Below are positions 3,381 to 61,547 of a stretch of DNA of 64,000 nt, in pieces (the stretch's first letter is position 1; every line of letters begins with the position of its first letter). Origin of the DNA: Octopus bimaculoides (Eukaryota). A program made the position numbers and the translations under genes. A model generated the notes under the pieces. That model had not been told where the DNA came from and made no database searches. It was given only the letters and a program-made list of their open reading frames with translations. The DNA is taken from assembly GCF_001194135.2 (NCBI RefSeq), contig NC_068986.1, positions 83,179,674 through 83,243,673 on the forward strand, written 5' to 3'.

Positions 3381-6300
3381 CGTATACATATATGCAGAAA
3401 ATTGTCAAATATTACTTAATTGCAATACTATAAGAACTTTTCTAGCACAAATATATGTACATGTATACATACATATATACATACATACATACATGTATGC
3501 ACATGCATGCATGTATGTACACACACACACATACATATATGCTGCAACTGCAATGTTGATCAAGATAATTTAATTCAATAAACAGTTTATTGTTTATAGT
3601 TAACTTGATACATATAAACAAGCATAATAGTAAAATGTACTGAAAATTCTAATCCTGTCAAGAGCTGTTTTACTGTTGATTATATTTCATGATTTTAAGT
3701 GCAAGTTTAAAGAGATATTTTCTGTGTGGAGTAATTATATGTATGTGTATTGAAAATGAATGTATTAATTTTCCTGTGCTAAGAGGAGTAAAAAATATTA
3801 AGTTTGGTGCTGTAATTTTGTCTTTATCAAAAGGAAGAATAGTTAATATGTATGAAGTTAACAAACATACAGAGTGAAAAATCCACAAATAATTGACTCT
3901 GTCTTTGTGTTCATTAAATGATTGTTAAAGGCACATTTTATTTATGTCACCCAATATATGTCAAACATATTATGTACAATCTCTAGGCTTAGAATTTAAT
4001 GAAGAGTAGCAGAAGAAGTGTGAATTTGCATTTGATCATAAATATTAAACTGTCTCTATGGCAAATAACAAGACCGACTTAAAGTACCTAGTAAATAAGG
4101 TACAAAAATAAATTACTTTTGGAAATGTACCAAATTGATCAGAAACTGAATGTAATTCTTCAATAGAACTCAAGCTTTTTAATTCTTTTTCTCAAGAAAA
4201 AAAGCATTGCTTTGAGAGCATTTCTGTCACTGTCTTGTATGAATGTCAAGGAAATAGTAGTCAGTCCCATTCACTTTTGAAAATAACTGTTGAAATTAGG
4301 AGTAATTATCATGATTAGTATAATTATTAATCTACTTCAGTAAAATCAAGTTTTCAAGCTGAAACAGTTTCAGATTTGTAGGTTTCATATTTATGAGTAG
4401 AAGATGGATTCTAAAGCTTAAATAATTATGTCTTTGTTGCAACACATGAATTTTTTGACTTATTCAATCATTTTTACTTCGTTGAATGATGGAAGTTCCC
4501 AGTAACATAAAATAAAATTTAGGAGCACTTAAGGCTTTGAGTTTCTGAGTCAAAAATCCATCAAAACCCAAACTTTTTTAATGAACCTTACGAAAAGTTT
4601 AGTTACTAACATGCACACATAAGTGAAGAAAATTCATTAGTAGTTCTTTAAAAATAGAACATTTACAAAGCTAAAAATGTTAATCAGATTTTAAGTGTTC
4701 TATTTCACAATTATCAAATATTAATTAATTGCAATACTGTAAGAACTTTTCTAGAGCAAATATTAAAGTTTATAAGTATTTATTGAACAGAATATGGTAT
4801 CAAATTGCAAAATGCCAACAGTTTTCATTATTATAGATTTAATATTCCATATTACCTAACTAAATGATTAAATTAGGCCACAAGTTGAATACTTTTTTAA
4901 AGCTTCTCATTTTTACATTTTGCATACTTGCAATAAATTTTCAAATTTACTCAATGAGATTTTGCAGAAGTGATAAGTGTTAGACATACTGAGCATGTTT
5001 TATAACTTGATGCCCAGAAAATAAACTGGATGTCAATTTGACATTGGACTCCTTTTTGATATTTCAAAAATATCAGACATGGTTGTAGGGAAGTTCACTT
5101 CAAAATCATGTTGTTTCGCATTCAGTTTTATTGCATAGCACTTTGATTAAGGGCAACTAATGCTTTACAATATATATATGTATATATATATATATATATN
5201 NNNNNNNNNNNNNNNNNNNNNNNNNNNNNNNNNNNNNNNNNNNNNNNNNNNNNNNNNNNNNNNNNNNNNNNNNNNNNNNNNNNNNNNNNNNNNNNNNNNN
5301 NNNNNNNNNNNNNNNNNNNNNNNNNNNNNNNNNNNNNNNNNNNNNNNNNNNNNNNNNNNNNNNNNNNNNNNNNNNNNNNNNNNNNNNNNNNNNNNNNNNN
5401 NNNNNNNNNTATATATATATATATATATATATATATGTAGGAAGATAATAAGAAAACTGATTTGGAGGTGAAAATACACATGGGTCTGAAAATGAAATGT
5501 GGTTTTAAAGAAATATTTTAATCTAATAAAATGCCATTTCAGTTTCAATAATTTATTTTATTTTTCAATGGTAAATAAAACTGAGATGAAGATCTAAAGG
5601 AAAGAGAAAAAGTTTCAAAGGATAAAATTTGCTCAAAATTAAATGCTCTAAAGATTTCATAGTAATAAATTAGACATGGAGACTTTAATGTACAAGAAAC
5701 AATTTTTTCACAAGTTCTGTCATATTATATGAAGGTGAATTGTTTGTTATTTGCTTTATTTGTTCAAACATGGAACTTGAACTATTTTTCAAGTTCCATG
5801 TTATTGCTTTGTATATATTGCTACTAAGACAGGTTTAAATCCCAATTGGCTACTTACTCAAAGGCATCACTTGTTTTTGTCTGCCTGTGACCTAGCATTC
5901 TGGTGGGTTGACTATTTGGGCAAGTCATTTGTTTATCATATGTTCTGGTCACATTATTGTTAGTCCAGTATTCTAGTTGGTTTACTGCCTGGTGATGTCA
6001 TTTGATTATCAACTTGTTTTTGTACAATAGTAGTCCAGCACTCTGGTTGGTTGTCTGTAGATGTCATTTGTTTACTAAATGTCCTGGTTTCTTGTTAAGG
6101 GTTGACAACAGGAAGAGCATTCATTCATTCATTCATTCAAGTGTATAATCCTGCATCAATTAACTTCCTGTCTAACCCAGTGTTTTCAACCATGGTCTTG
6201 GATTGAACAATAAACTTGCAAGCAAAAATTTGTTGCATGTGTGTGTATGTGTGTATACACTTACACACTTTCACTGATATATTTTAGTAAAGGATATATA

Positions 6301-11179: not shown

Positions 11180-12865
11180 TGACACTCCTAAATCATGCAA
11201 GTAACAGGAAATACCCCAGTTTCTGAGTATAACCATTAGTTGGATACAAAATCTGACCAATGGTAACCCGTAATCCCCCAAAACATTCTAGTACTAAAGG
11301 AGTTCAGGTGGCTCACAAGGGCTCTGGATGGTGTCCAACTCTTGCAACTGTAGAACAAGATAGGGAGGACCAGAGACTTGAAGATCTGAACCTTTGTCTT
11401 CCTGCACAGATATTAGCAGCACAAAACACTCTTGTCCAGTGAGTCCACAACTGTATCAGGACATCCAAGTCTTTCTAAGACTTCAAACTCATAGCTGTGG
11501 GTCACACTGCCAAGATAAGTGAAGTGGTCAGCATCCTCACCTACAACAGATGCAGATGAGATAGAGTCCCCCAGGAAGCCAATGAAACACTGGATTTTTG
11601 TCTTGACCCAAGACACTCTAAAGCCAAGTGGTTTTGCCATCTCACTTAGTGAAAGAAGAGTGCTGCTTAAGACATCCAGAGACTCAGCAAGAATAACTGC
11701 ATCATCAGCAAAATCCAGATTAGTAATCCTAGTTTTGCTAATGTGTGTGCCACAACTCAATCAAGTCATCATTTGGTCAAGTATACAGTTTGTGCAGACA
11801 TTGAACAGAGTAGGAGCCAAAACACAACCTTGACAGACCCCAGAGCCAACTGAGAAAAAGTCATTAAGCATTATGATTTCACTGTAGGCAATACATGAGC
11901 CAGAAGTGTGAAGTTGCCTCTGAACCTCCTCACAAATTCCTTGAATATACTTTCCTTTGTCAGACCTCAGTGCTCTGACTACCCCACATCTCAGCCTCCA
12001 AAGCATATCAGCAGGGGGCCCACACAGTCTCACCCTGTGGCTGCATACCATTGATGTGAGGGTCTCCCTGGAAAGGAAACCAATACATTCACTAGCAGTT
12101 GACAGTAGGTTGTCCTTGTAAGTTTCTCACATTCTCACAGGCATAACTAAGGGACCAGCCCTAAGTAGCACAGACCCAAGCTAGTGTGAAAAGTCTTGCT
12201 TACACTGTTGTCTTTGAGTCTGTTGACCTATAATCTGGGATCTGCTGCCTTCAGCCTTTCAGACTTCGGTCATAATCTCAACTCAGTCACCACAAATTTA
12301 TGACCAGTGCCCACAAAGCTAACACTCTGAAAAACCCTGCAGTTCTGTAGGACTTTCCAATGGTCATCCACAAGCTTGTGACTGATCTCCTTTGCCACAT
12401 GACCAGTATTAGAAGACCAAGTTCAGCAATGCAGCTCAGGATATTCATACCAGGAACCAGCAATGTGAACTCTGTGGCTTGTGGCAAAGTCCAGGAGCAT
12501 CACACTATTTTCATTTCTAGTACTGGACTCAAAAGGGCTGGTGACACTCTCATATCCCATTCTGTCAATGCCAGTAGATGTGGTGAAATCTCCCATGACG
12601 AAAGATGCGTTTCTGTTGGAAATACTCCCAATGACAGAGCATAGTCAGGCATAGAATGCCTCACTCATCGACCTGTCACTCACAGCATACACTGCAACAA
12701 AGGAAATGATACCCCGAGAAAGTGGGATCCTCAGCGACATAATATGCCCTTTGACAGGTGTTACATCTGATATCATTGGAACCAGTCAGTTGGCTACTGC
12801 AACTGCTATCTTCCTGACATATCCGTCAGCAGAGCACCCAGACCAATAGTTTCAGAATCACTGAT
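11180..12865 (-). mobile_element. Degenerate LINE (RT domain)
   Basis: ORF track shows GVCQGCVLAPTLFN and NLDFADDAVILAES...LGFRVSWVKTKIQ...FTYLGS. Confidence 0.8.
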
Positions 12866-31770: not shown

Positions 31771-31781
31771 AAAATGGCGGC
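31771..31781 (+). promoter_or_regulatory. YY1-type motif AAAATGGCGGC overlapping the start codon
   Basis: Close match to the AANATGGCGGC YY1/Kozak-overlapping element typical of housekeeping RNA-binding protein genes. Confidence 0.5.
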
Positions 31782-31851
31782 TTATGAGGGTCATGTAGCA
31801 AAGCGTCAAAAAACTGAAAATAATGGATATGGAATGAACCAAGGAGGAAAA
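31774..31851 (+). CDS. HNRNPL: hnRNP L exon 1 (MAAYEGHVAKRQKTENNGYGMNQGGK)
   Basis: ATG in AAAATGGCGG context, KRQKT NLS-like motif, donor AAA|GTAAGT, phase 0 matching exon 2. Confidence 0.85.
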
Positions 31852-34800: not shown

Positions 34801-37800
34801 ACTGTAAATGTTACATCCGTATACCAATCATTCCCCCTTCTCTATTACAGTTATGTTATCATGATGCCAAAGAAAAGACAGGCTCTGGTGGAATTTGAGG
34901 TGAGTTGGGCGATTTTACTAAATCCATTGGAAATATTGAAATTTGTATTTGCTGATTAGATGGTATTTTATCACTCATCAAATCAAGTTAATTTAAAGAT
35001 TTTTTTTTTTTTTTTTTTCCAAATCGTGTATATTTAACTGTAAGGAAATTATTTACTGTTGTATAGGATATAGCCGGAGCGACTGAGTGTGTGAACTATG
35101 TTCAGTCCAATCAACTTTATGTTAGTGGTCACCCTGCTTTCTTTAATTTCTCTACCAGTCAGAAGATCCAGAGACCAGGGTAAGCTTTATATATATATAT
35201 TTTAGAAAATATTGGGTCTGTTTACTGTGGATATAATTTCATGAAGATGATTTAAGGCCACTTAAAAGTATTGTTTGTAAATATTGTATTTTATTAAAAA
35301 GGAAGAGGTACAGAATAACGTACATATTTTACAACTTTAATATATATATAATCCATTTCTTTTGTTTGTAGTGGCCCAGAAGATATGCGGACTGCAAACC
35401 ATATTTTGCTCTTTACCATTTTAAATCCACAATATCCGATCACTGTGGTATGTAACCATTTTATTATTTTTTATTCTAATTGGGCATTTGTTTAATAACC
35501 ATTACAAATATCTTTGCATTTAATTTTCCAGGAAGTGATGCATACAATCAGTTCTCCATATGGGCAAGTACAAAGAATTGTTATCTTCAAAAAGAATGGT
35601 GTCCAAGCAATGGTTGAATATCCTTATTTTACAAAGTGAACATAGCTTTCAATAAATTGAAATTAATTGTTTGTTTATTTGCATTCTGACTTTAAAGGCA
35701 CTTTATTTACTTGCATAAAGCTGTTACTGGTTTTGCTGGAATGGCTTTTCCACTGTTGTACTATTATGATTAAATGCTTGGGGTGGATTTGTATAAATTG
35801 TTGGGTAAAATGCTTATTTGATAGGGTCATTTGTAAAATAACAAATTAATATCATATAATTGTTTCTAGATGTTCTTTGACATTTGGGAATTTTTACATT
35901 GTGTAATGTATTCATATGCTGAGTGCACAGGACGAAAATATACTGACATTCATTAAACTCTAATAGCTGGGTATTTGCTTAAAAACTCAACAATCCTTTC
36001 TGCTTTTTCTGGTGGCAGGAGGCAGGATTTCAACTCAGCCAAATCTGGTAATTTAACCCAAGATAAAGGCAAAGTTGGCTTAGACAAGATTTAGACCCAA
36101 GTGCAGTTGAACAAAGTATTTTAGTGATCACTGTACCAACTCTGTTAATTTGACATTTTCTCTGTGTATGCATTGCTGTGCAATTTAGAATTTTGAAGTC
36201 CATTTGCATGATTTTAGGTTCAATCTCAGTGCATAGCATTTTTGCAGGTCTCCTCTTCTGTAGCTCTGTACTGACCAAATCGTTATGAGTAGATTTGGTA
36301 TTGTTGCAGAAATTGCAAGAAGCCTGTTGTGTGAGCGTAATGTTTGTCTCTGCTTCTTTTGACATCACTGATAGTTGTGTTGCTATTATTCATTTCCAAT
36401 TTGCTGTGGAAACGTGTCTGGCTACGGGGAAATATTACATTCTTTGGAAATGAATGTTGGGTAACAGGAAGATCATTCAGCTGTAGTAAGTCAACCTCAG
36501 TAAATTGTGCAACCCATGCAGGCACAGGAAAGTGTATGTTAAAATGGCATGACTGTTTTATAAAATGTATATCTTGTAGTTAGTATTCCTTAACCATTTG
36601 TACGTTTGAAAGTGTTGATCAAGCAAAACGTGCAAAGCAGGCTCTGAATGGTGCAGACATTTACTCTGGTTGCTGTACACTCAAGATTGAATACGCAAAG
36701 GTAAATTTTCAAGTTTTTAATTCAGTATTAGAAATTATATTCACTGTTATAGATCTTGCTTCAACTATTTCTGTAATTTTTAATTTGTTGGCTTGTGAAA
36801 ATGAATTTAAGTTTCGCTGTTTCACTTGTTAAGTTACTTTCATTGCAGGGTTGTTTGTATTGTGAATCATTCAATGCTTAAAGTGGTATCATCAAATATG
36901 TCTTGTAAAGAATTTTATTTTGAAATATCTTACGGTCTAGTTTTTTTTTTTTTTTTTTTTTAAATAAATTCACTTCAATGGGTTTTTTTAATTTGTTTTT
37001 TTATCAGCCTACAAAATTGAATGTTGTCAGAAATGACAATGAAAGTTGGGACTACAGCAATCCTTCTCTCGGTAAGATGCAATTTTTAACATTTTAAATT
37101 TGATGGACACCAGCACTCTTATTTTCCTTTCTAGAACTGGTGGTAATCCTGGTTAACATACGCACTATCCAGTTGAAAATGACCATAACTTGCTTAACTC
37201 TAACCTATTTAATGTTTCAATATTGCAAGCCAAAGGCATGGCTGTAGTTTTAATGTAACAATAGTTGCTACTAACATACTCTTTCTTAAATTAGCACTAA
37301 GCAACCAAAACAATGAAATTATTTGTTATCTTGGTTCCTTAGTGATGTCTTCTGGTCTTGTTTAGAATAATTCTGTTCTCTTGTTGCTTAATTGGGATAG
37401 TTTGCGAGTTTTTCCTTCGATTCCATAAGGGTGCTAGTGAACAACAATACCATTACATTTTGCAGAACTTAGGGAATCTGTCACCTTTGTTTAGTAGATA
37501 GCCCAGTGATGGGTAATCTGCTAGTCAAATTTCTTTAATTGGTGTAATTTATAATGGCTTGGTTGTGGTATACTAATAAATTATTCTAAGGTAGGTGGTT
37601 TTAAAATTGGCCATGGGCTTCTTCAGTCATTAACTTTAAATTATCTTTCTATTGTTTATTAGTATCTTTTTGAGGAGTGGTTATTAGGGGAGGAAAAATG
37701 CATGCATACAAATACAAACAAGTGACCATTTCAGATAACATACAAAACATTTGTCTCAGTCATATTGAAACTAAATAAACTTTCAATTACAAAACATTTT

Positions 37801-40800
37801 ATATCGTATCATAGACTTAACATTCCAAATTTCGTTACAAAACATGCACATTTTATTAAGCACAATCATCTGTATTCTCAGTAAATGAATTAAAATGATC
37901 ATGTGCTGGCAGGGAACTACTATTGTCTGAAAGATGGTAGTAGGTTAGTGCCCAGTGAAACCACTTGTTTGTGAAGTTATTCACTTGTTTTATTCTGCAC
38001 TAGCTTTTTACATTCAGCCAATTTTAAGTTGTTAAAAGTGATTTCCCCCTTATTTTTTTTTATATTTTGAACATTAAAAAAATCTTGCCAGCCCTTTTTT
38101 AAACAGTTGATTATGAAGCAAGTTGTTTGCTGTCTGAGATGCCATCCTTTCCAAAATCCCCAACATGAAGACAAGTCATCCATCTTGAGAAAATCCATTT
38201 GAAAACAAACTTTAAAATCATTACACTAACATTTGGGTTTTTATTAAACCCATTAAAACAAGTCAGCCACATACAACGTAGAAAAGAAGTGGACATGTTA
38301 CCTAATATTCAGAATTTGTAAATGTTCCACCTTTCTATCCAGCAAAATTACAAACAGAAGCTGCTATTCTACATCTAGAACAATAGAAAAAGTTGCAGAA
38401 TAAACTCAAGCACAGAAAGATATCAACATCCACATTACTCATCTGACCGTCACAGGTCACAGACTGGAGCATTCTCCACCTGCAGACAGACTTCCCATAC
38501 ACAGAAGAAGCACTATTCAGTCAGTCAAGTACATCAACCAAACTTAAAATACAATATCATCACCACCACCATCACTACCAAGCAGATACTCACCACCGCA
38601 CAGAACAAAACATAAAGCGGCCAGGTCCACACAAGGTGTCACTATACCCTGTAAACCCATCCATCTGTCTGACTCCTACGCTTGTTTGCCTTCCTACAAC
38701 CAAGTCTGGTTAGTTTACTGACCTGTGATTCTGTGTGCATTATACAGGGTGTAGGCCAGTGCAGGCTCGGCCCTCCTGCTACTACTACTACTGCTGGATG
38801 AGGAGGAGGAGGAGAATGTGAGCAGCATCGTGTTGATTGAACCATATCAGGCTCAACTACTTCATTGACCAACAGCTACTTCTGGCTTTAACCAAATCAC
38901 CATGGCTCCTTCCATTGCTGTTATCTCACCAGAAAATCAACTGGTAGATTTTTTATTTTTCTCCTTATTTTCCAGGATGTCTTTTATTAAAAATAATATT
39001 TATTTTTTAATATTTAAGTTTTCCATATATCTATTATACATTTCCTGTTTTTCCTTTTGGATTACTAATTTTCATTCTCTGAAGCCATTTAAGATATTGG
39101 CTTGCTTTCAAAAAATTGACATTACCATCTAACATTAAAACAGAAAAGGTTAGACTATAATGAGATATTTATTTCCTTCAATTTATTATTTTCATACATT
39201 AATCTTTTATAATGCTGGAACCTTTTAGAGCAAATGGAAGAAGTGTAGTCATCTTCATTTGATTACCATACGCTGACTGACTGACTGCTGCTGCTATCAC
39301 CAGTTTTGTGTTTTTAACTGCAACAAGTAATAGTTTGGAAATATAAGAAAATTCAGTTTGTATACAGAACACTGCATCTGGTTTTACTGTATTGAAAAGA
39401 TAAAGTATTTGTACTCTAGCAAGATCTGAACATATTCACAAACACACGTAGGCTGATTCTAAGTAGTGTAAGCAGAATAAACCCAGTGAAATGTTGAAAA
39501 TTTACATTTATTACATTACATCTAAATTGCTAGTCGAATGAATTCTAATTTAAAACTTCTTTATGCATAGGTAATTAGTGTAATGTGGATCAAATTAATT
39601 TAAAGTAATATATGCAGTGACTGCTCAATCATTCCCTACCTCCCCCCATACGATTATTTCGATGTTGATCCATTGAACTCTAAATCTAATAATCTCAGGC
39701 ATCTGACAAACTTTCCCAATTCCAAATATTTGGATTTAATCTTTTGTATTTTTGTAAATATAAAAATTTCACTTGGACTTCTTCACATTCAATGGGTTTC
39801 ACTTTTATTAAATGAACTATGAATTGAGAACTCCTTTCCATTTATTTTTTAAAATGTATGTATACCAAAAAAAAAAAAAAAAAAGCATTAGTTTATATTG
39901 CTGGGGTGAGTTTTCCATCCAGCTCATAGGTAAGTTGAGTAGAAAATTGCCAGTTATGTTTTGTTTTTGTGTGTGGGATCATGTGTTGATTTTTTTTCTT
40001 CTTCTTCCACTCCCTTTTCTGTGTCGTACATAATAGTCCAAACCACTGTAGTCAGATTCCCAGGCTGTAGTGAGTTACTTTCCTTGTACAGAATTGATAT
40101 TTGCCGGATCTTGCAACTGGGCTTTTTTTCTTCATCCACCTCTCCTCTCCCTTCACCACAGGACTTTTAAGAGAGATTACTACATTCTGGGAATGTAGAT
40201 TTTCTTTCTGGAGGACACACAAAGCAAGCTGTTTTAATTCATAAGTGCATGAACTGGTTAAATTTTAAAATTCCTTTGGATATATTAACATTTTTTCTTA
40301 AGGCGTAGGTGAGGTTGAAATAGTTCGATTTATGAGAATGCACAACTTGTGCTTGATTTTATATATTCTATACATTATCTCTGGTTTAGCTAATTCGCTT
40401 ACTAAATCTGCAAATTAACTCTTCCCATTCATCTTAGTTTTTATGATATTAACATTTTAATGTGTTTCCTAATTTACAGGGGTGGGGTTTTAATTTCTTT
40501 TTTTTCTCATTTCTAATTTACACTAAAGCTTTGTTTCATAATGATTCAGATCGAGGAGTTAATTTAGTTAGATTTACATTGCCACATTTCCTGAAAGTTA
40601 TGGCTGGTAATTTATGTTGACCAATCTTGTGCCAGCCAAATTCTTAGTAAATTCTTTCAGCTGAGAAAGTTAAAACCATAGTATACTAAAAGGCAACAGC
40701 AGTCAGTTTATCTGCGGTTTGTTTGGCAAACTAGTAACTTCACTGTCTGCCGCTTTCCTTGCTTGCTCTGAGACTTATCTCACCTGTGTCACTTTGTTTC

Positions 40801-42705
40801 AGGTAAGAGTCCTGTGGTTGCTAAAAATCAGCCTTTGCTGCAAGATCCGCGCTATGCACCAGGGCCCACTCCCTATGGTGAGTGTCCTCAATCACCAGGT
40901 GAAGTATTGTTCTAAAGCTCCATTTTCTTCTTAGTTGTTGTCACATCTCATAATGCTCTAGTTTTGAGTTGCATAATATTTAACAATAGAGCTTCTCTAT
41001 CTTGGTTACTAGAATTTATTTTAAGCAATACCTCTCTTTTAATATATTTTGGTGCCAGTTTTTGATACTGAAAAGTAGTGTCCTGTATAATGCAGAGTGC
41101 TACTTGGTCACACGTGTATTGAAAGTGATTGAATATATGCATTTAAAAAAAAAAAAATTTTTTTTACTTTATCTAAAAAGTGCTATACGGCAACTATTTG
41201 TGGTATCTGTTAGTGTGAATTGTTTACTGTGAAAATGCTTGTTAAATGGCATGGCAGGCTGCTGTTATTTTTTCAATATATCTTGGCCTTATGGGCTGTT
41301 CTCCATACTTTTTTTCTATTAGTGCAGATATTTTCTTCAAACTGTCTGCATCCTTAAACTATATTACAATGTAGATTTTAACAATCATTTAGTTCCTGTG
41401 TGATATTTTTCTTCTCCATTTGTGGATTTGGTATCTCTGGTTGGTTTTCAAACTATAAAATATACAGCCTTTATGTTTTAGCTAATTAACCTGAAATAAT
41501 TTTTGAACCCCTTGTCCTGTCAAGCTTATAGTAATTTTCTCCCCTCTCACTTAGTATTTTTCCCTTCTATTAGAATTAGCAAAATGTATTGAATCTTGCA
41601 TTTCTTAGTTTTTTCTTCTTTTTTTTTTAGCAACCATTTAAAATGTTTTCTACAAATTAAAGAAAATTTTTAAAATGTAGTTAAGGGCTAAAGTGAAACA
41701 AATTTTAGTATTCAGATTGAAAAATAAGTAATTTTGTACAAAAATGAATTATTAGCACCATTTCATATTTCATTATTTGCTTGCTGAATTTAATTTATTC
41801 ACATTGTCATCCAATCATTAATTCTTATACTCTAATTTGCCATAATGTTGATTTGCTTCATTTTATTCATTTGTTTATTTTTCATATCTAAAGAAGTTGG
41901 ACTCTTGGGTAATTTGCTTTTTATTTTTTTTTCTTCTTCCTCCATTTTGTCTTGGATGATTGCTTTTCTAGTGCTTGCTAGTCGTGTCATCTAAGATGTT
42001 GTAAAGTTACTGTTGTGCTACCTCGTATGTTTTGACTTAACTATACCTTTGGCTGGCATTAACACTTTCACAATCTTTCTTGGGTTGGGCAAGATATAGT
42101 TAGGATTAAAATAGTTTTTCTTTTTATGAGTGTCGTCTTGGTTTTTGTATTGTGTGTGTGTGTATATATATATATATCTATATATATAAATATATTAAAT
42201 GTGGCAGCTCTTGTACTGTTTGCCACCCCCTCAGCTTAATGGCTCTCTCTCTCACACCTATATTTGAATAAATATGGTACATATTCTTTTAGATATATAT
42301 ACATACATGCATAAAATATAAATGGAAATGGGTTTTTTATGAATACAGCTGCTCTGGTTCTTTTATGTTTGAACATGAAAGTGAATTCAGAGAGAAAGTT
42401 GGTATTGATATTTTAAATGTTTGGTATCAGCTTATGAGATTGTTTTTTATATAAACAAAAGAAAAAATACTCTTGATATTAAAACTCTTTGAGTTTGCCC
42501 TCTTTTGTAGATCTATTAAGAAATGGAGTTTTTCTCTGAAGTGTTTTAAATTATTGGATTGTTACATATGTGCAAATTTTGAGTTTTACACTGTACATAG
42601 CTGAGTGAGCCTACTGTTTCTGCAAAAGTTTTATTTAGTATTGAAAATGTTATTTTCGTATAACAGCTGATTTGGATTTTTTATTTTTTAAAAGAATTTT
42701 TTAAA

Positions 42706-45700: not shown

Positions 45701-48700
45701 TACTGTTTCCAATTTTACTTTTGACTTTTACTGACATCAGAAAGTTTATGGGTAAACTGCATTTGGAAAGAACATTTGTCGTTAATCTGGTTCAGTTGCA
45801 CACCATAAGTTAACTTATTAATCAAGTTCTGTGGTAACTGTTTCAGGCTGCAGGTAGATTGAGTTTTAGAAAGTGCAAAATGAATTGAGGTTAGGAAGTT
45901 AGCATTTGACATTTTTTGTGTTGAACGGTTTTAAAGTTTTGTGTTTGTTCTTTGAAGAATATACTTTTTACTTCCAGGATCGCTATGGTGCTCCTCCAAT
46001 GCCACCTTACGAAGATCCTAACTCGCGTATGATGGGGCAACACCAAAGTGGTGGTGGTGGTGGTGGTGGCGGTCCTCAACAAGGAGCAGTACTTATGGCT
46101 TATAGCCTTAATATGGATAAAATTAACTGTGATTCAATTTTCAATTTGTTCTGCCTTTATGGTAATGTTGTACGGGTAAGTTATGGTTGTTTTTTGTTTT
46201 GTTTTTCTTTCAGTAGAAATGTTTCTTAAACTACAAATTGTTTGCTTGAGATAACTTTTGTTTTTTTCTTTTTATAATTAGATTAAGTTCTTAAAGAGCA
46301 AAGAAGGGTCAGCAATGATCCAAATGGGGGATAATCAAGCAGTGGACAGAGTCATTCAGAATCTCAGTGGCTGCTACTTTGTTGGTAAAAAGATACAACT
46401 GGGGTTAGTATTTTTCATTCACTTAGTATATTCTTTTTGGCTACTGCTTCTATATGGGTAGCGTGTTTTACCAGCTGTGTTTTGTCTAAATTTGATTTAA
46501 GTGTCTCGGTGTGTATATAATGATTCTTCAATAAATCAAATTATTTGTCAAATGATTATCTTTGCCACAGTTTTATTAGTGAAAAGATTTATGGAAAAAT
46601 AGCCTTTTTTTTTTTGTCCCTCTGGAAAAATTGGCAATTATCTTCCATGTTTATTTTTCTTTTTAATACAGATATTCTAAGCAGGCTTTTCTGCAAGATG
46701 TTCCTAATCCACATACTCTTCCAGATGGATCTCCATCATTCAAAGATTTCATGGGTAGCCGAAACAACCGTTTCACTAACCCAGAAGCTGCAAGCAAGAA
46801 TCATATCCTTTTTGAATTAATTTTACATGAATAAATAACATGCATGCATTGTGTTAATACTTGTTGCATATAGTAACTCGTTTTATAGGTGGGGGGTGCA
46901 TTTAATTTTCTATTACTAAAACAGGATGGAAATATAAAATAAATTTAGTATAACAGAAACAGATAACTATTTGTTGTTGAATTATGTTTCCTTGTAAATT
47001 GTACAAATGTTTACAGTTTTGAGTTTTGCTTGAAATCCTTAACATACGTCAAGTATCCAAGGGCCTGCTAAAGTACTACACTATTTCAATGCTCCACCCA
47101 ATATAACAGAGGATGAAATCTGTCAGGTTGGTTATAATTATTTACTTTTAGTCTTTGATGTAAGAGAATGTTATGTTCTTCAATAAATTCCCATTCTATT
47201 TTGTACTAACTGAGCACATTTTTTATACCAGGTGTTTACAGATGCTGGAGCAAAGAGTCCTGTAAGGATTAAACAGTTTCCTTCCCGTAGTAAGTATTTA
47301 CTTTGTCTTTGTGTTTTCCTTCAGCTCATAGATGTGGCTGTGATGCCAGGCTTAGTCTTATTGTGTCACTGTGACCAGGTGTTTTTGATTATAGCCCCAG
47401 GCCAACCTAAGACTTGTTAGTGGATTTGGTAGATGGAAATAGAAAGAAGGCCATTGTGTGCATGTGTCTTTGTGTTGATTTCTCCCTCACCGCAACTATT
47501 TGACAACTAGTGATGGTTTGTTTGGAGCACCATAACTTAGAGAGGATCATAAAACTCATAGAATGTGCTAGGCTTTAAAGAATAGTACGTGGGGTCTTTT
47601 TTCTTTTTTTTTTTTAAGGACCCTTCAGGTTGGTGTTCTAGCATGGCCGCAGTGCAGTGACTGAGGCGGGTAAAAGATTAGTGTCAGGAAATTTAAGCAG
47701 GGTTTTCTTTATGGTGTTTGGTTTGATTTGCGTCAGTGTTAACTGAATATTTTTCTTAATAGTTTTAATTTGTGTTTCAGCGGAAAGAAGTTCTACTGGG
47801 CTGGTTGAGTTTGAAACTAAAGCCGATGCTATTGAAGGCCTTGTGGCTTGTAACCATCAAAGTATTCCCAATCCTAGTAAGTTCTGTTTTCATGAAATTT
47901 TTTCAGCTTTACACATAAATAGCACCTATGTTCACTGTGTATTATGTGCAGTGGTGAATTAATGATGAACTGAGGACCTCGTTCTATGGTATTTGTGAAT
48001 TTAGACTGGTTTTATAAAGTAAGACATCAGCATAGGAAATTGTTAGATAATATTCAATGAGTTATACAACAAAATTTTAATATTGAAGGATTGTGCAAAT
48101 TACTGGTTATGTGTTAACTTAATATACATTAAACAGAATGAAATACTGAAATGTAAATCAAATTTACATGCACAGGCTGGCAATATTCCTAGAAATGCTT
48201 GGATTTCTAACTTCTGAACATGTATGAGATGTCTCCTTTCCTTCTGCATAAGGTTTAATTTCTACGGAAATCACTCCAAAGGATAAAGTAAAAAATTAAT
48301 CTAATAGTTTCATTTCCTTGAGAGGATTGTAGCCACATCTAACATCTTCCTTAAAAATTACTAAGAAAAGTATTTTAAAAATTTTTACTATATTCAGGTG
48401 CAAATCAATGGAAAAATTGATAGAAATCTCCAGTGGTTTGCAGCTCTCAGATGTAAAATAGTGTAAATTTGTTTACATGGTGAAATCATGTGTTATCACA
48501 AATGTACGATTGAAATTTGCACTGAAATTTTCCATTTAAACACAACTAGGTTATTACAGTCATTTTTGAGCAGGTTTGCAACATTTGCTTGTGAAATTTT
48601 AAGCCAGCTATACCATCTTGGTATCGAAAGGGTTAAAATTTGTAATTAGTATGTGACATTGTTTACTTGACTAAATTGCTTACAACGGCTCAAGTATATG

Positions 48701-56471: not shown

Positions 56472-57716
56472 AGGGTTGGACAAAATAATGGAATGGCCTT
56501 AACATTTCAAACAAATTTATTTTAATATAGCATAAGACTGCCTCTGGCAGTAATTATAGCTTGAATTCCATGTGGTATGGGTTGTACAAAGTTTGAATTT
56601 TTTCAAGAGGGATTTTTATCTATCCTTCAGCTAAAACACTCGCCAGTTCTTGTAGTGATGATGGTGGAGGATATCGACTCCTTACTTGTTTTTCTAAAAT
56701 GCACCATAAATCTTCGATAATATTGAGATCTGGGGACTGTGGTGGCCAGATGAGATGTTCAACTTCACTAGAATGTTCCTCATACCATTCAGTAACAACT
56801 TTAGATGTATGAATTGGTGTGTTATCATCCTGAAAGATTGTGTTTCCCTCCGGAAACAGTTTTACAACCAGAGGATGAATTTGGTCAGATAAAATGCTTA
56901 AATAGTCTTGACTATTGATTCTGCTATTAAGGGAAACCATTGGGCTGGTGGATTTCCAAGATATAGCCCTCCTAGATCATCACAGATCCTCCTCCATGTT
57001 TAAAAGTTGAAAGAAGGCAGTCTGAGTCAAATGCTTCTTTTGGCTGTCTCCGCACGTATACTTAGCCAATTTTCAGAGATAAGGTAAAGGATGACTCGTC
57101 TGAGAAAATAACATTCTTAGGGACCAATTCTGTAGGTTTTTACTCCACTCTAAACTTTTGTTTTTGAAAGTAGTGGCTTTCTGATTGCAGTCCACTCATG
57201 AAATCTGGCTATGTGAAGCTCCCAGTGTACAGTTTTTGTGGAAACTGGGCTCTCAAGATGGTCATTAAGCTCTGCAATAATTTTGGGAGGTGTACTCTTG
57301 TGATCCTTTCTAACAATTCGCATAAGAGCCCGACGGTCCCTATCTGAAAGTTTTGGTTTTGTTCCAGAGTTTTGTTTCATTGAGGTTTTTCCCTCTTTCT
57401 CAAAGACTCATTATTTTCAAGACAGTACTTCTTGATACACCAAACATTTCGGGTATTTTCATTATGCTAGCGCCTGCCATACGAGCACCAACAGTTTGAC
57501 CTTTTTGAAAGTCCGATAGATCTGTCATTTTAATGAATTTTAATTACATTTTCCTGATGATATCTGAAAAGAAACAGCAACTTTAGCAAAACATATTAAG
57601 CAACACTAATAATAAATTAAAAAACATAAAAATAAACAAGCTTTGACAACTTTATAGATATTTCAAAATTATGGTGCGATGATGCCAGATGTTTCCATTA
57701 TTTTGTCCAACCCCTG
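56470..57716 (-). mobile_element. Full-length but decayed Tc1 element (DD34E-type), 1247 bp
   Basis: TA-flanked TIRs CA(A/G)GGGTTGGACAAAATAATGGAA. ORF fragments KPKLSDRDRRALMRIVRK...RKPLL and IFQDDNTPIHTS...WPPQSPDLNIIEDLW. Confidence 0.92.
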
Positions 57717-59814: not shown

Positions 59815-60190
59815 TTATTACCTCCACCTTCACTAAGGCTGAGGCATTGTTTTCATTTATGTTTGTTTGTTTGTCTGTGGACAAGATATCTCAAGAACTG
59901 CTGGATGGATTCGGATAAAAGTTTCAGGGATGTTTGGCCTTGGGGCTGGCACAAACTGATTAGATTTTAGGATTGATCTAATACTGGACAAGGATTCTGG
60001 TTTATTTTTCCTGTTTTTTTCCTTAATTTTTGACAGCAGTCGGGCTCATTTTTAGTATTCTTGTTTGTGAGAGCAATCGAGTTTATTCTAGATATTCTCA
60101 TTTTAAAAATCATCTTTGGCTAATTGTTGATAGGACGTTGCTGTCTCAGAGTAACAAATTGTTTGTTTGAGTTTTGTCACTTTTGACCAC
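59815..60190 (+). mobile_element. DINE/Helentron-like non-autonomous element
   Basis: TTATTACCTCCACC start with subterminal hairpin and GTTT microsatellite. Second copy at 44560-45122. Confidence 0.6.
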
Positions 60191-60199
60191 GGTTGGATT

Positions 60200-61350
60200 G
60201 TTGAAGGCTTTCTCTTTGAGACTGTCTGTTGTTGAAATTGTTTTATATCACTGTAGAAAATTATTGTTGAAGCGACTCGCGCATAATTATTTTTTGCTGT
60301 TTTCTCCCCATTGTTGGGGTGAAAGGTTGGTTTTTCATTGTGGAGGGCTATGCAGGGGCCGCTGCAGTGGGAGCAACTGCACCGTTGGAAGCGAAGCAGA
60401 TAGATTTAAAAATGGAAGATATAGTGGGAAGTGGACGGTTTGTGCAAGGGGAGGGAGGTGCAGTTGTGCTGGTCCCTCCAGAGGAAGTGGTCAAGGATGG
60501 GACAGTGGTGTGCCGCACGTGGGTAGTTTCCACCAGTAAAATTGAAATACTATTGGAGGACAATGTGGAGGGGTGCTTGGAACCAGTGATGGGAGTGGCA
60601 GCTTTCATGGGTCGAGGGAGGTAGTATGGTGTGGTGGAGGTTGGGGTTTGCCACCGAGAAGGGAGCGGCCTCACATTCCACTACAATTTTGCACACTGAC
60701 AGGGTGGCACTGCTGCCCACGTATGGGGGCGGGTGAGGCATGTGGGTTTGAGTTGGAGGGGTGCCACCAGAAGTGGAGACGGAGTTGTTGGTGGTGATTG
60801 TTCTAGCTGCCACCAAGGGGGTCCCGAGTTGGGACTGGTGGGAGGAGTGAGCATGTTGAACTTTTGGGGATGCGGTGTGAAGATGTGGCTTTTTGCATCT
60901 TTCGAAGACATTGTGAGGATCCCCTACTAGATGGAGATTACAGGAGTGGGTTCCCTCAAAGTGGTTGTTAAGGGTTGCAACCAGCTTGTTGCAAATGTGG
61001 GGAGAGGGACATATGAGGACACGGTTCCCCAGGCATGGGCCTCCTCAGAGTGAGAGAGCTGTAGAGGGGGACCAGGAGGAGGTGGAAATTGGAGTGCCAG
61101 TTAAAGCAGTGAAGGATGGAGATGGCAGAAAGCAATGCGGAGTGCACTAGAGATGCAGAGGAGGTGAGGCAAGGGGAAGGCGGAACGAGGGCAGCAGGGG
61201 AGGGGAGTGACAGGTTTGTTGACCCCAAAAGGAGGAGGGGGCAGGATAAGGAGAACACTCACAGGGACCGGCGGTGGAACCAGATGAGATGCCCAAGAAG
61301 GTTGGGGAGCCACCTGTATTCGAGCATGTGCAGACGGTGGAGATGGAGCT
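60200..61350 (-). other. GC-rich, Ser/Thr/Pro-rich decayed coding-like segment, probably retroelement-derived
   Basis: Abrupt GC-rich block with several overlapping low-complexity ORFs and a degenerate Cys/His finger-like stretch (CPSPHICNKLVATLNNHFEGTH). No splice structure. Confidence 0.35.
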
Positions 61351-61547
61351 GGGGAAGGTTGGTCTATGGGATTACCTTAAATTTCCCGTCCATAAAGGGT
61401 TTAACGCTATGGCATATCGTCATATCCCCAAAAACCCTTTATGGACAGGTAACCTAAGGTACATCTCATAAACCGGCCTTCACCATTTTTAATATATACT
61501 ACTTTACATCTTACAGTGTGCTTCTTTCGGATATGTTTTTTTACAAA

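Follow-up and report, generated by a model that had tools for sequence, protein, structure and literature searches.

Intron 8 of the HNRNPL gene of Octopus bimaculoides was analyzed within a 64,000-nucleotide (nt) stretch of contig NC_068986.1 (hereafter the window, in whose positions all coordinates are given). With a probability of about 0.6, this intron holds an unproductive-splicing module, by analogy with the autoregulatory exon 6A of vertebrate HNRNPL. The module would consist of a sense-strand CA cluster of 400-600 nt (about 38160-38700) and a cassette exon directly downstream, whose acceptor lies at 38747/38748. Of its donors, the main conserved one is 38943/38944, and 38817/38818 is a possible internal one. 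If included, the exon would place a stop codon, either TGA 38819-38821 or, for the short form, a TAA at the start of exon 9, ahead of eight exon junctions. The exon-including mRNA would encode RRM1-2 only and would be removed by nonsense-mediated decay (NMD). Excess hnRNP L would bind the CA cluster, raise exon inclusion and thereby hold its own level constant, as in the case of vertebrate exon 6A. This anatomy is accompanied by extreme conservation, by positional homology with the vertebrate intron and by recurrence of the layout in other phyla. From the vertebrate analogy we infer the splicing of the exon, the NMD of the isoform, the binding of hnRNP L and its action as an activator rather than a repressor. 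On anatomy, position and exceptional conservation, a regulated unproductive exon appears by far the best reading of the element, and the recurrence across phyla seems to favour an hnRNP L feedback loop.

Anatomy and conservation of the intron 8 element

The gene model was obtained by tblastn with a human HNRNPL query, and the splice sites were then read by eye. The window was found to hold HNRNPL on the plus strand in 17 exons, and its translation matched XP_014776468.1 with 0 mismatches. A preceding reading of the DNA letters (the sequence-only reading) had proposed such a module, and the CA motifs it quoted, their coordinates, the branch point, the acceptor, both donors, the (GAG)n tract and the exon numbering are all exact in the sequence; the numbering is right because exon 1 lies at 31774-31851. 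The stops it had derived were reproduced by in-silico joining. The 70-nt form joined to exons 8 and 9 reads ...AGA AT/G TAA (slash, splice junction), giving a peptide that ends in ...RRRRRM and a stop, and the TGA of the long form lies 122 nt upstream of the junction to exon 9 (criterion, >50 nt), with eight junctions following the candidate exon.

A four-species alignment was built from the O. bimaculoides locus and its orthologues in O. sinensis, Argonauta hians and the cuttlefish Acanthosepion (Sepia) pharaonis (hereafter Sepia). Whole-gene blastn between Octopus and Sepia returned the 17 coding exons, a 15-nt microexon at 41894-41908 (isoform X1) and one further block, 38257-39015, which tops all Octopus-Sepia matches of the gene (515 bits, E 5e-147); the remainder of intron 8 is unalignable between the two species. 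The conserved unit starts within the CA cluster, reaches its highest identity at the 3' splice site, continues through the exon and stops about 40 nt beyond CTG/GTAGA (Table 1), a profile that, judged from the alignment, has the shape of an exon. The core of this unit exceeds the coding exons in identity (75-93% for the coding exons between Octopus and Sepia), and across the four cephalopod sequences the near-invariant element spans 430 nt. Conservation in related species, which had been named beforehand as a check, was thus found, with both the cluster and the exon-like block exceptionally conserved across cephalopods.

The highest CA count per 500 nt on the plus strand in all 64 kilobases (kb) was 74, starting at 38141 (mean 34.4, standard deviation 9.5), and the 950-nt CA maximum of the window, on the same strand, started at 37691. 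Within the gene, the 300-nt peak contained 52 CA versus 5 TG (z = 5.5), with 27 CA for the runner-up elsewhere in the gene, which bears out the expected excess of CA density over the other introns. Both A and C abound in the cluster, where the ratio of observed to expected CA is 1.46; it is neither a microsatellite nor a repeat within the window. The split of the cluster into two blocks, as described in the sequence-only reading, held in part: block 2, beginning at about 38160, contains the CA maximum of the window, but block 1 (37700-37870) can be aligned to Argonauta and not to Sepia and is shared among octopods only. Block 1 is probably not a core part of the module. Between Octopus and Sepia, 57% of the CA dinucleotides in the distal cluster are retained, compared with 42% of other dinucleotides (p about 0.05). 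Insertions that the cluster has in Sepia only are CA-rich as well (14.7 CA per 100 nt). This preferential retention and the CA-rich insertions suggest that selection acts on the composition of the distal cluster, which is conserved more than its exact sequence.

Splice sites were ranked with a crude consensus matrix that served for ranking only. In intron 8, the acceptor of the candidate exon ranked 14th of 191 AG, donor 1 (38817/38818) 6th of 191 GT and donor 2 (CTG/GTAGAT at 38943/38944) 19th of 191 GT, and the tract after donor 2 (38944-38975) had the second-best acceptor score of the intron. The long form measures 196, 199, 180 and 215 nt in the four cephalopods, each of which keeps an in-frame stop in it, and donor 2 with its flank is invariant in 4/4. 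Relative to Sepia, the exon has indels of lengths not divisible by three. Its frame is not conserved, but the in-frame stop is kept; with these indels and the stops, a coding cassette exon was rejected. The 70-nt poison exon put forward by the sequence-only reading would introduce a stop in octopus, but its Sepia counterpart measures 81 nt, is in frame without a stop and ends in a poor donor (CAT/GTGACC). Because the stop of the long form is present in 4/4 cephalopods, donor 2 and its flank are invariant and the Sepia short form lacks a stop, the long form, 38748-38943, is taken to be the conserved poison exon. Donor 38817/38818 may serve as an alternative donor in octopods.

The same intron in vertebrates, other molluscs and amphioxus

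Vertebrate HNRNPL reportedly autoregulates through a CA-rich cluster in its intron 6 and the poison exon 6A. Two reviews place a highly conserved poison exon, 6A, in intron 6 of human HNRNPL and state that HNRNPL activates it by binding immediately upstream (PMC8652244, PMC7547044). In the elephant shrew Elephantulus, exon 6 was found to be PTRLNVFKNDQDTWDYTNPNLSGQ (L005 4991-5063), which ends in phase 1 and is followed by a 3.3-kb intron 6. Because this exon is PTRLNV...SGQ in phase 1, octopus intron 8 is, judging by exon identity and phase, the positional and phase-1 homologue of mammalian HNRNPL intron 6. The shared intron site lies after the PT(R/K)LNV...WDY exon, between RRM2 and the Gly/Pro-rich linker. 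The intron position given in the sequence-only reading was therefore correct, with Elephantulus exon 6 homologous to exon 8 and exon 6A located in intron 6. As a positive control, Elephantulus was compared with Alligator, which showed a CA cluster conserved at 73% followed by a 222-nt block conserved at 82%, and this block contains an AG...GT segment with an in-frame stop.

The octopus element resembles vertebrate exon 6A in that the same intron has a sense-strand CA cluster directly upstream of a conserved stop-carrying cassette exon, which in octopus is a candidate. Conservation is also alike over comparable divergence, at 73% for the cluster and 82% for the exon block between Elephantulus and Alligator and at 62-94% for the cluster and 86-98% for the exon and acceptor between Octopus and Sepia. 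The octopus element differs in having two candidate donors and an invariant U-rich tract, resembling a 3' splice site, past donor 2. Splicing, NMD and hnRNP L dependence are documented for the vertebrate exon, whereas the octopus element is known from its sequence. A shared 11-mer, CACCACCGCAC, present in octopus (38591-38601) and in elephant shrew (L005 6850-6860), was not significant (E 0.44) and was dismissed. Its distance upstream of the putative poison exon is about 157 nt in octopus and about 176 nt in elephant shrew.

Other regulated exons offer further comparisons. A poison exon is present in the corresponding intron of HNRNPLL, the paralogue of HNRNPL. HNRNPLL is regulated by HNRNPL "in a similar way", as one review puts it (PMC8652244). 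The protein search returned one hnRNP L-type cluster for each mollusc species looked at, with no search aimed at a second gene. If molluscs have one gene only, the octopus circuit would be one of autoregulation, in contrast to the cross-regulation of HNRNPLL. Ultraconserved poison exons are reported to occur in SR and hnRNP genes. Those of SRSF3 and TRA2B belong to this type (PMC13228269). In these genes as in octopus, a non-coding cassette and its flanking intron are more conserved than the neighbouring coding exons, and the stop is maintained while the frame is not; the octopus element differs in being extremely conserved within cephalopods, with complete sequence turnover between classes and phyla. 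PTBP1 autoregulates by exon 11 skipping coupled to NMD (PMC7547044). The likeness lies in a related RRM family and in self-feedback via alternative splicing and NMD, which is proposed for octopus. The difference is that PTB represses a constitutive-type exon, the skipping of which shifts the frame, whereas the octopus protein would activate a normally skipped exon.

The homologous intron measures 2.9-4.7 kb in the species compared and is preceded by a phase-1 exon wherever the exon end was determined, the amphioxus boundary being approximate only. The gene-wide maximum of sense-strand CA falls in this intron in Sepia (z 6.8), Crassostrea (z 4.4), Branchiostoma (z 4.3) and Elephantulus (z 3.5), and in two scallops its CA density is only in the top 3-6%. 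The sole sizeable intronic block conserved between the scallops Pecten and Argopecten (85% over 218 nt) lies just past the CA cluster, and three further matches of 27-47 nt all fall within the cluster. This block extends from an acceptor, ...TTGTCCCTTGACAG/, with conserved branch point, tract and AG, to a donor, AATG/GTGATG, delimiting 163 or 167 nt with an early in-frame stop. Between the oysters Crassostrea and Saccostrea, the sole conserved intronic block also lies past the CA cluster, runs from TAATGAC...TCTTTAG/, where branch point, tract and AG are conserved, to G/GTAAAT and contains an in-frame stop. In amphioxus (Branchiostoma), the CA cluster only was found, and the intron had no more than chance-level blastn matches to its mammalian and octopus counterparts. 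In the clusters of five independent lineages, CACA/ACAC is enriched about 3.5-fold (mean log2 1.8-1.9, each at least 2.8-fold). The cephalopod, scallop, oyster and amniote elements cannot be aligned with one another.

The sequence-only reading had suggested the same circuit in this animal, either ancient or convergent. The layout does recur in scallops, oysters and amniotes and, for the cluster only, in amphioxus, but no sequence is shared across phyla. At slightly less than even odds, the combination of CA cluster and poison exon in one intron is ancestral to Bilateria and has lasted in chordates and molluscs for over half a billion years. The exon sequence itself would then have turned over fully across amniotes, amphioxus, cephalopods, oysters and scallops, leaving the element traceable by position and composition. 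In the literature searched, the circuit is described for vertebrates only, in line with the sequence-only reading, which was not aware of any description outside vertebrates. If octopus works alike, the circuit either predates the protostome-deuterostome split or evolved repeatedly in the same intron. Either case would show that position, composition and logic can preserve a homeostatic splicing loop even as its sequence is exchanged. Should the ancestral reading be true, the circuit would be among the oldest traceable hnRNP autoregulatory splicing circuits. The analysis also adds a candidate unannotated functional exon to cephalopod HNRNPL, and its procedure, which looks first for the CA peak of the homologous intron and then for the closest block conserved in the lineage, is applicable to any genome.

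Evidence against the module and competing explanations

Several observations weigh against the proposed autoregulatory module, and they are presented here together with the explanations they bear on. Seven pseudo-exons in intron 8 score as well as the long form, and all seven would introduce a stop, as would be seen if the candidate were a chance pseudo-exon beside a compositional fluctuation or a transposon fragment. Since an exon-like pattern and the "poison" property alone are weak evidence, the case is carried by conservation. No other Octopus-Sepia match in the gene is as strong as the element, which occurs once in the window, and its conservation effectively refutes a chance origin, the probability of which is negligible. 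A repeat or transposon origin was rejected on the single-copy occurrence in the window.

Donor 2 scores 0.6 with the crude matrix, against 1.6 or more for all real donors of the gene, and the exon boundaries are uncertain for this reason. A weak donor followed at once by a strong tract resembling a 3' splice site is odd for a simple cassette exon. It would suit a decoy or non-productive splice unit that leads to retention or nuclear detention of intron 8 and so to negative regulation without a spliced poison exon, an explanation that also agrees with the failure to detect a spliced product in protein collections. We consider this explanation improbable; the positional homologue in vertebrates is described as a spliced poison exon (PMC8652244).

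Searches of protein collections for transcript evidence also speak against an included exon. A profile built from the exon 8-poison exon peptides of the four cephalopods matched none of 5.8 billion proteins, including those of RNA-seq assemblies. Seven full-length truncated proteins predicted for octopus, Argonauta, Sepia, oyster and scallops were looked up as exact sequences, and none was found. A Crassostrea query of exon 7, exon 8 and the poison exon returned fragments and intron read-throughs only, with the poison-exon part uncovered; among the oyster RNA-assembly proteins, P0153 and P0156 were set aside because they read through the intron that immediately precedes exon 9. All annotated octopus isoforms listed are full-length (539-579 residues), and the candidate exon is absent from the two that were read, X1 and X7, in which exon 8 is followed by exon 9 or 10. 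For a low-abundance NMD substrate, these tests have low power and the negative results are weak evidence.

A candidate exon without transcript evidence might also be a conserved non-coding element acting at the DNA level, such as a transcriptional enhancer, or an unannotated non-coding RNA, with its location in the intron incidental. Conserved non-coding elements do occur in cephalopod genomes. In this case, however, the limits of conservation coincide with sense-strand splice signals, the composition is strongly strand-asymmetric, all other conserved blocks in the gene are exons, and the layout recurs with unrelated sequences in the same intron of bivalves and amniotes. Together with the lack of an Rfam match and of a structural signal, these features make such an element very improbable. 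The Rfam search of 37000-41000 gave no match (one chance match of E 0.8 elsewhere), the folding stability of the element was ordinary (z-score -0.21), and no compensatory changes were seen. Because of these three results, a structured RNA such as a small nucleolar RNA or microRNA host is considered unlikely. RNAalifold paired the CUCCUU of the 38944-38975 tract with the exonic (GAG)5 (38800-38814), and the columns involved are all invariant.

Near the exon, the 500 nt upstream of the acceptor contain 9 CACA versus 1.4 expected, but CACA/ACAC in block 2 reach only the 92nd percentile window-wide, a moderate enrichment of the core motifs that is due to CA microsatellites elsewhere in the window. 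Such TA/CA microsatellites flank the assembly gaps at about 1-720 and about 5200-5400 (905 N in total) and raise the CA-tetramer background of the window. The top over-represented tetramers of the cluster include CCAC, CACC, CATC and CAGA beside CACA, and its richness in CAUC and CACC is a further point against hnRNP L as the regulator. Motifs of the CAUC/CACC kind are bound by SRSF3, YBX1 and PCBPs. The exon could accordingly be a real conserved unproductive exon mainly under other factors, namely SR proteins on (GAG)n, PTB or TIA-like proteins on the U-rich tract and the CAUC/CACC binders, with the CA richness not serving as an hnRNP L sensor and with cross-regulation in place of autoregulation. 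The invariance of the purine-rich and U-rich tracts is in line with control by these factors, as is the modest window-wide CACA/ACAC enrichment. Control mainly by other factors is nevertheless rather unlikely, as CACA and ACAC are enriched in the same intron of five independent lineages and the vertebrate cluster at this position is a documented hnRNP L target (PMC8652244, PMC7547044).

Within the autoregulatory reading, the direction of the effect is a separate matter. When bound upstream of an exon, hnRNP L often represses it, which also counts against the reading, and for this reason the sign assigned here follows the vertebrate precedent and the logic of homeostasis. A last opposing result is that the cephalopod element, compared by sensitive blastn with the mammalian and scallop introns, gave chance-level matches only (E 0.03 or higher), and the oyster intron likewise yielded none beyond chance. 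Because the elements of different phyla have no sequence similarity, the argument for their common descent is one of position.

Coordinates and neighbouring features of the locus

Table 1. Coordinates of the HNRNPL exons and intron 8 features in the window, with identities to Sepia along the conserved unit.
Feature	Position	Strand	Remarks
Exon 1	31774-31851	+	tblastn model, match to XP_014776468.1
Exon 8, PTKLNVVRNDNESWDYSNPSL, 64 nt, ends phase 1	37008-37071	+	Upstream constitutive exon; homologue of mammalian exon 6
Intron 8	37072-40802	+	Gene model
CA/A-rich block 1	37700-37870	+	14.6 CA per 100 nt, 99.5th percentile; A-rich; 2 CACA/ACAC
Distal CA-rich cluster, putative hnRNP L binding platform	38160-38557	+	Holds window CA maximum; 62-74% to Sepia, many indels
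Proximal C/A-rich stretch, CATCACCACCACCATCAC...CACCACCGCACAGAACAAAACAT...CCACACAAGG	38558-38700	+	94% to Sepia, 99% to Argonauta
Branch point TACTGAC (38716-38722), weak pyrimidine tract, CAG acceptor	38716-38747	+	Acceptor score within range of the gene's real acceptors
Candidate poison cassette exon, long form, 196 nt	38748-38943	+	In-frame TGA 38819-38821; CTA/CTG repeats; (GAG)5 38800-38814
Candidate short form, 70 nt, internal donor AAT/GTGAGC at 38817/38818	38748-38817	+	Better donor by consensus in Octopus
Donor 2 and invariant U-rich tract GTAGATTTTTTATTTTTCTCCTTATTTTCCAG, 32 nt	38944-38975	+	Reads as a weak 5' splice site, then a strong 3'-splice-site-like or U-rich element
Exon 9, 75 nt, starts GTAAGAG; annotated cassette exon	40803-40877	+	Downstream exon; exon and flanks 91% to Sepia
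Identity to Sepia	38160-38400		62%
Identity to Sepia	38401-38557		74%
Identity to Sepia	38558-38700		94%
Identity to Sepia (branch point, tract, CAG)	38701-38747		98% (46/47); Argonauta 47/47
Identity to Sepia	38748-38817		87%
Identity to Sepia	38818-38943		86%
Identity to Sepia	38944-38985		93%
Identity to Sepia	beyond 38985		46%

The region from exon 8 to exon 10 is an alternative-splicing hub. Exon 9 opens with GTAAGAG right after CAG and thus resembles a recursive splice site that regenerates a 5' splice site once joined. It is left out of annotated isoform X7, and isoform X1 lengthens it and gains the 15-nt microexon AAGTTGGACTCTTGG (41894-41908). With their flanks, exon 9 and the microexon are 87-91% conserved to Sepia.

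Two introns of octopus HNRNPL, 35618-36603 and 46803-47052, are of the U12 type. The first has the donor GA/ATATCCTTAT and the branch site TTCCTTAAC and ends in AC. The second has the donor C/ATATCCTTTT and the branch site TCCTTAAC at 47036-47043, and the frame requires an end in ...CAA (AT-AA termini). The same U12 donors were recognized in Sepia, Argonauta, scallops, oyster and amphioxus by the tblastn read-through signatures "MVEY" and "KNHI". The first U12-type intron is also present in alligator, and the second is absent in elephant shrew.

Elsewhere in the window, a transposase fragment of the Tc1/mariner type (DDE_3, E 3e-13) was found on the minus strand at 56623-56976, and a weak reverse-transcriptase match (E 0.007) on the same strand at 11764-12126. 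A GC-rich block lies at 60000-61400, with a GC content of 0.44-0.47 and a GC skew of as much as +0.36. It contains long open frames in both orientations, matches nothing in Pfam, and may belong to a neighbouring gene as an exon or be of low complexity. Just upstream of HNRNPL, an aldose-1-epimerase gene lies head-to-head in O. sinensis (L002 1-1305), Argonauta (L003 1-778) and Branchiostoma (L009 1-432), an arrangement that points to conserved microsynteny between molluscs and amphioxus.

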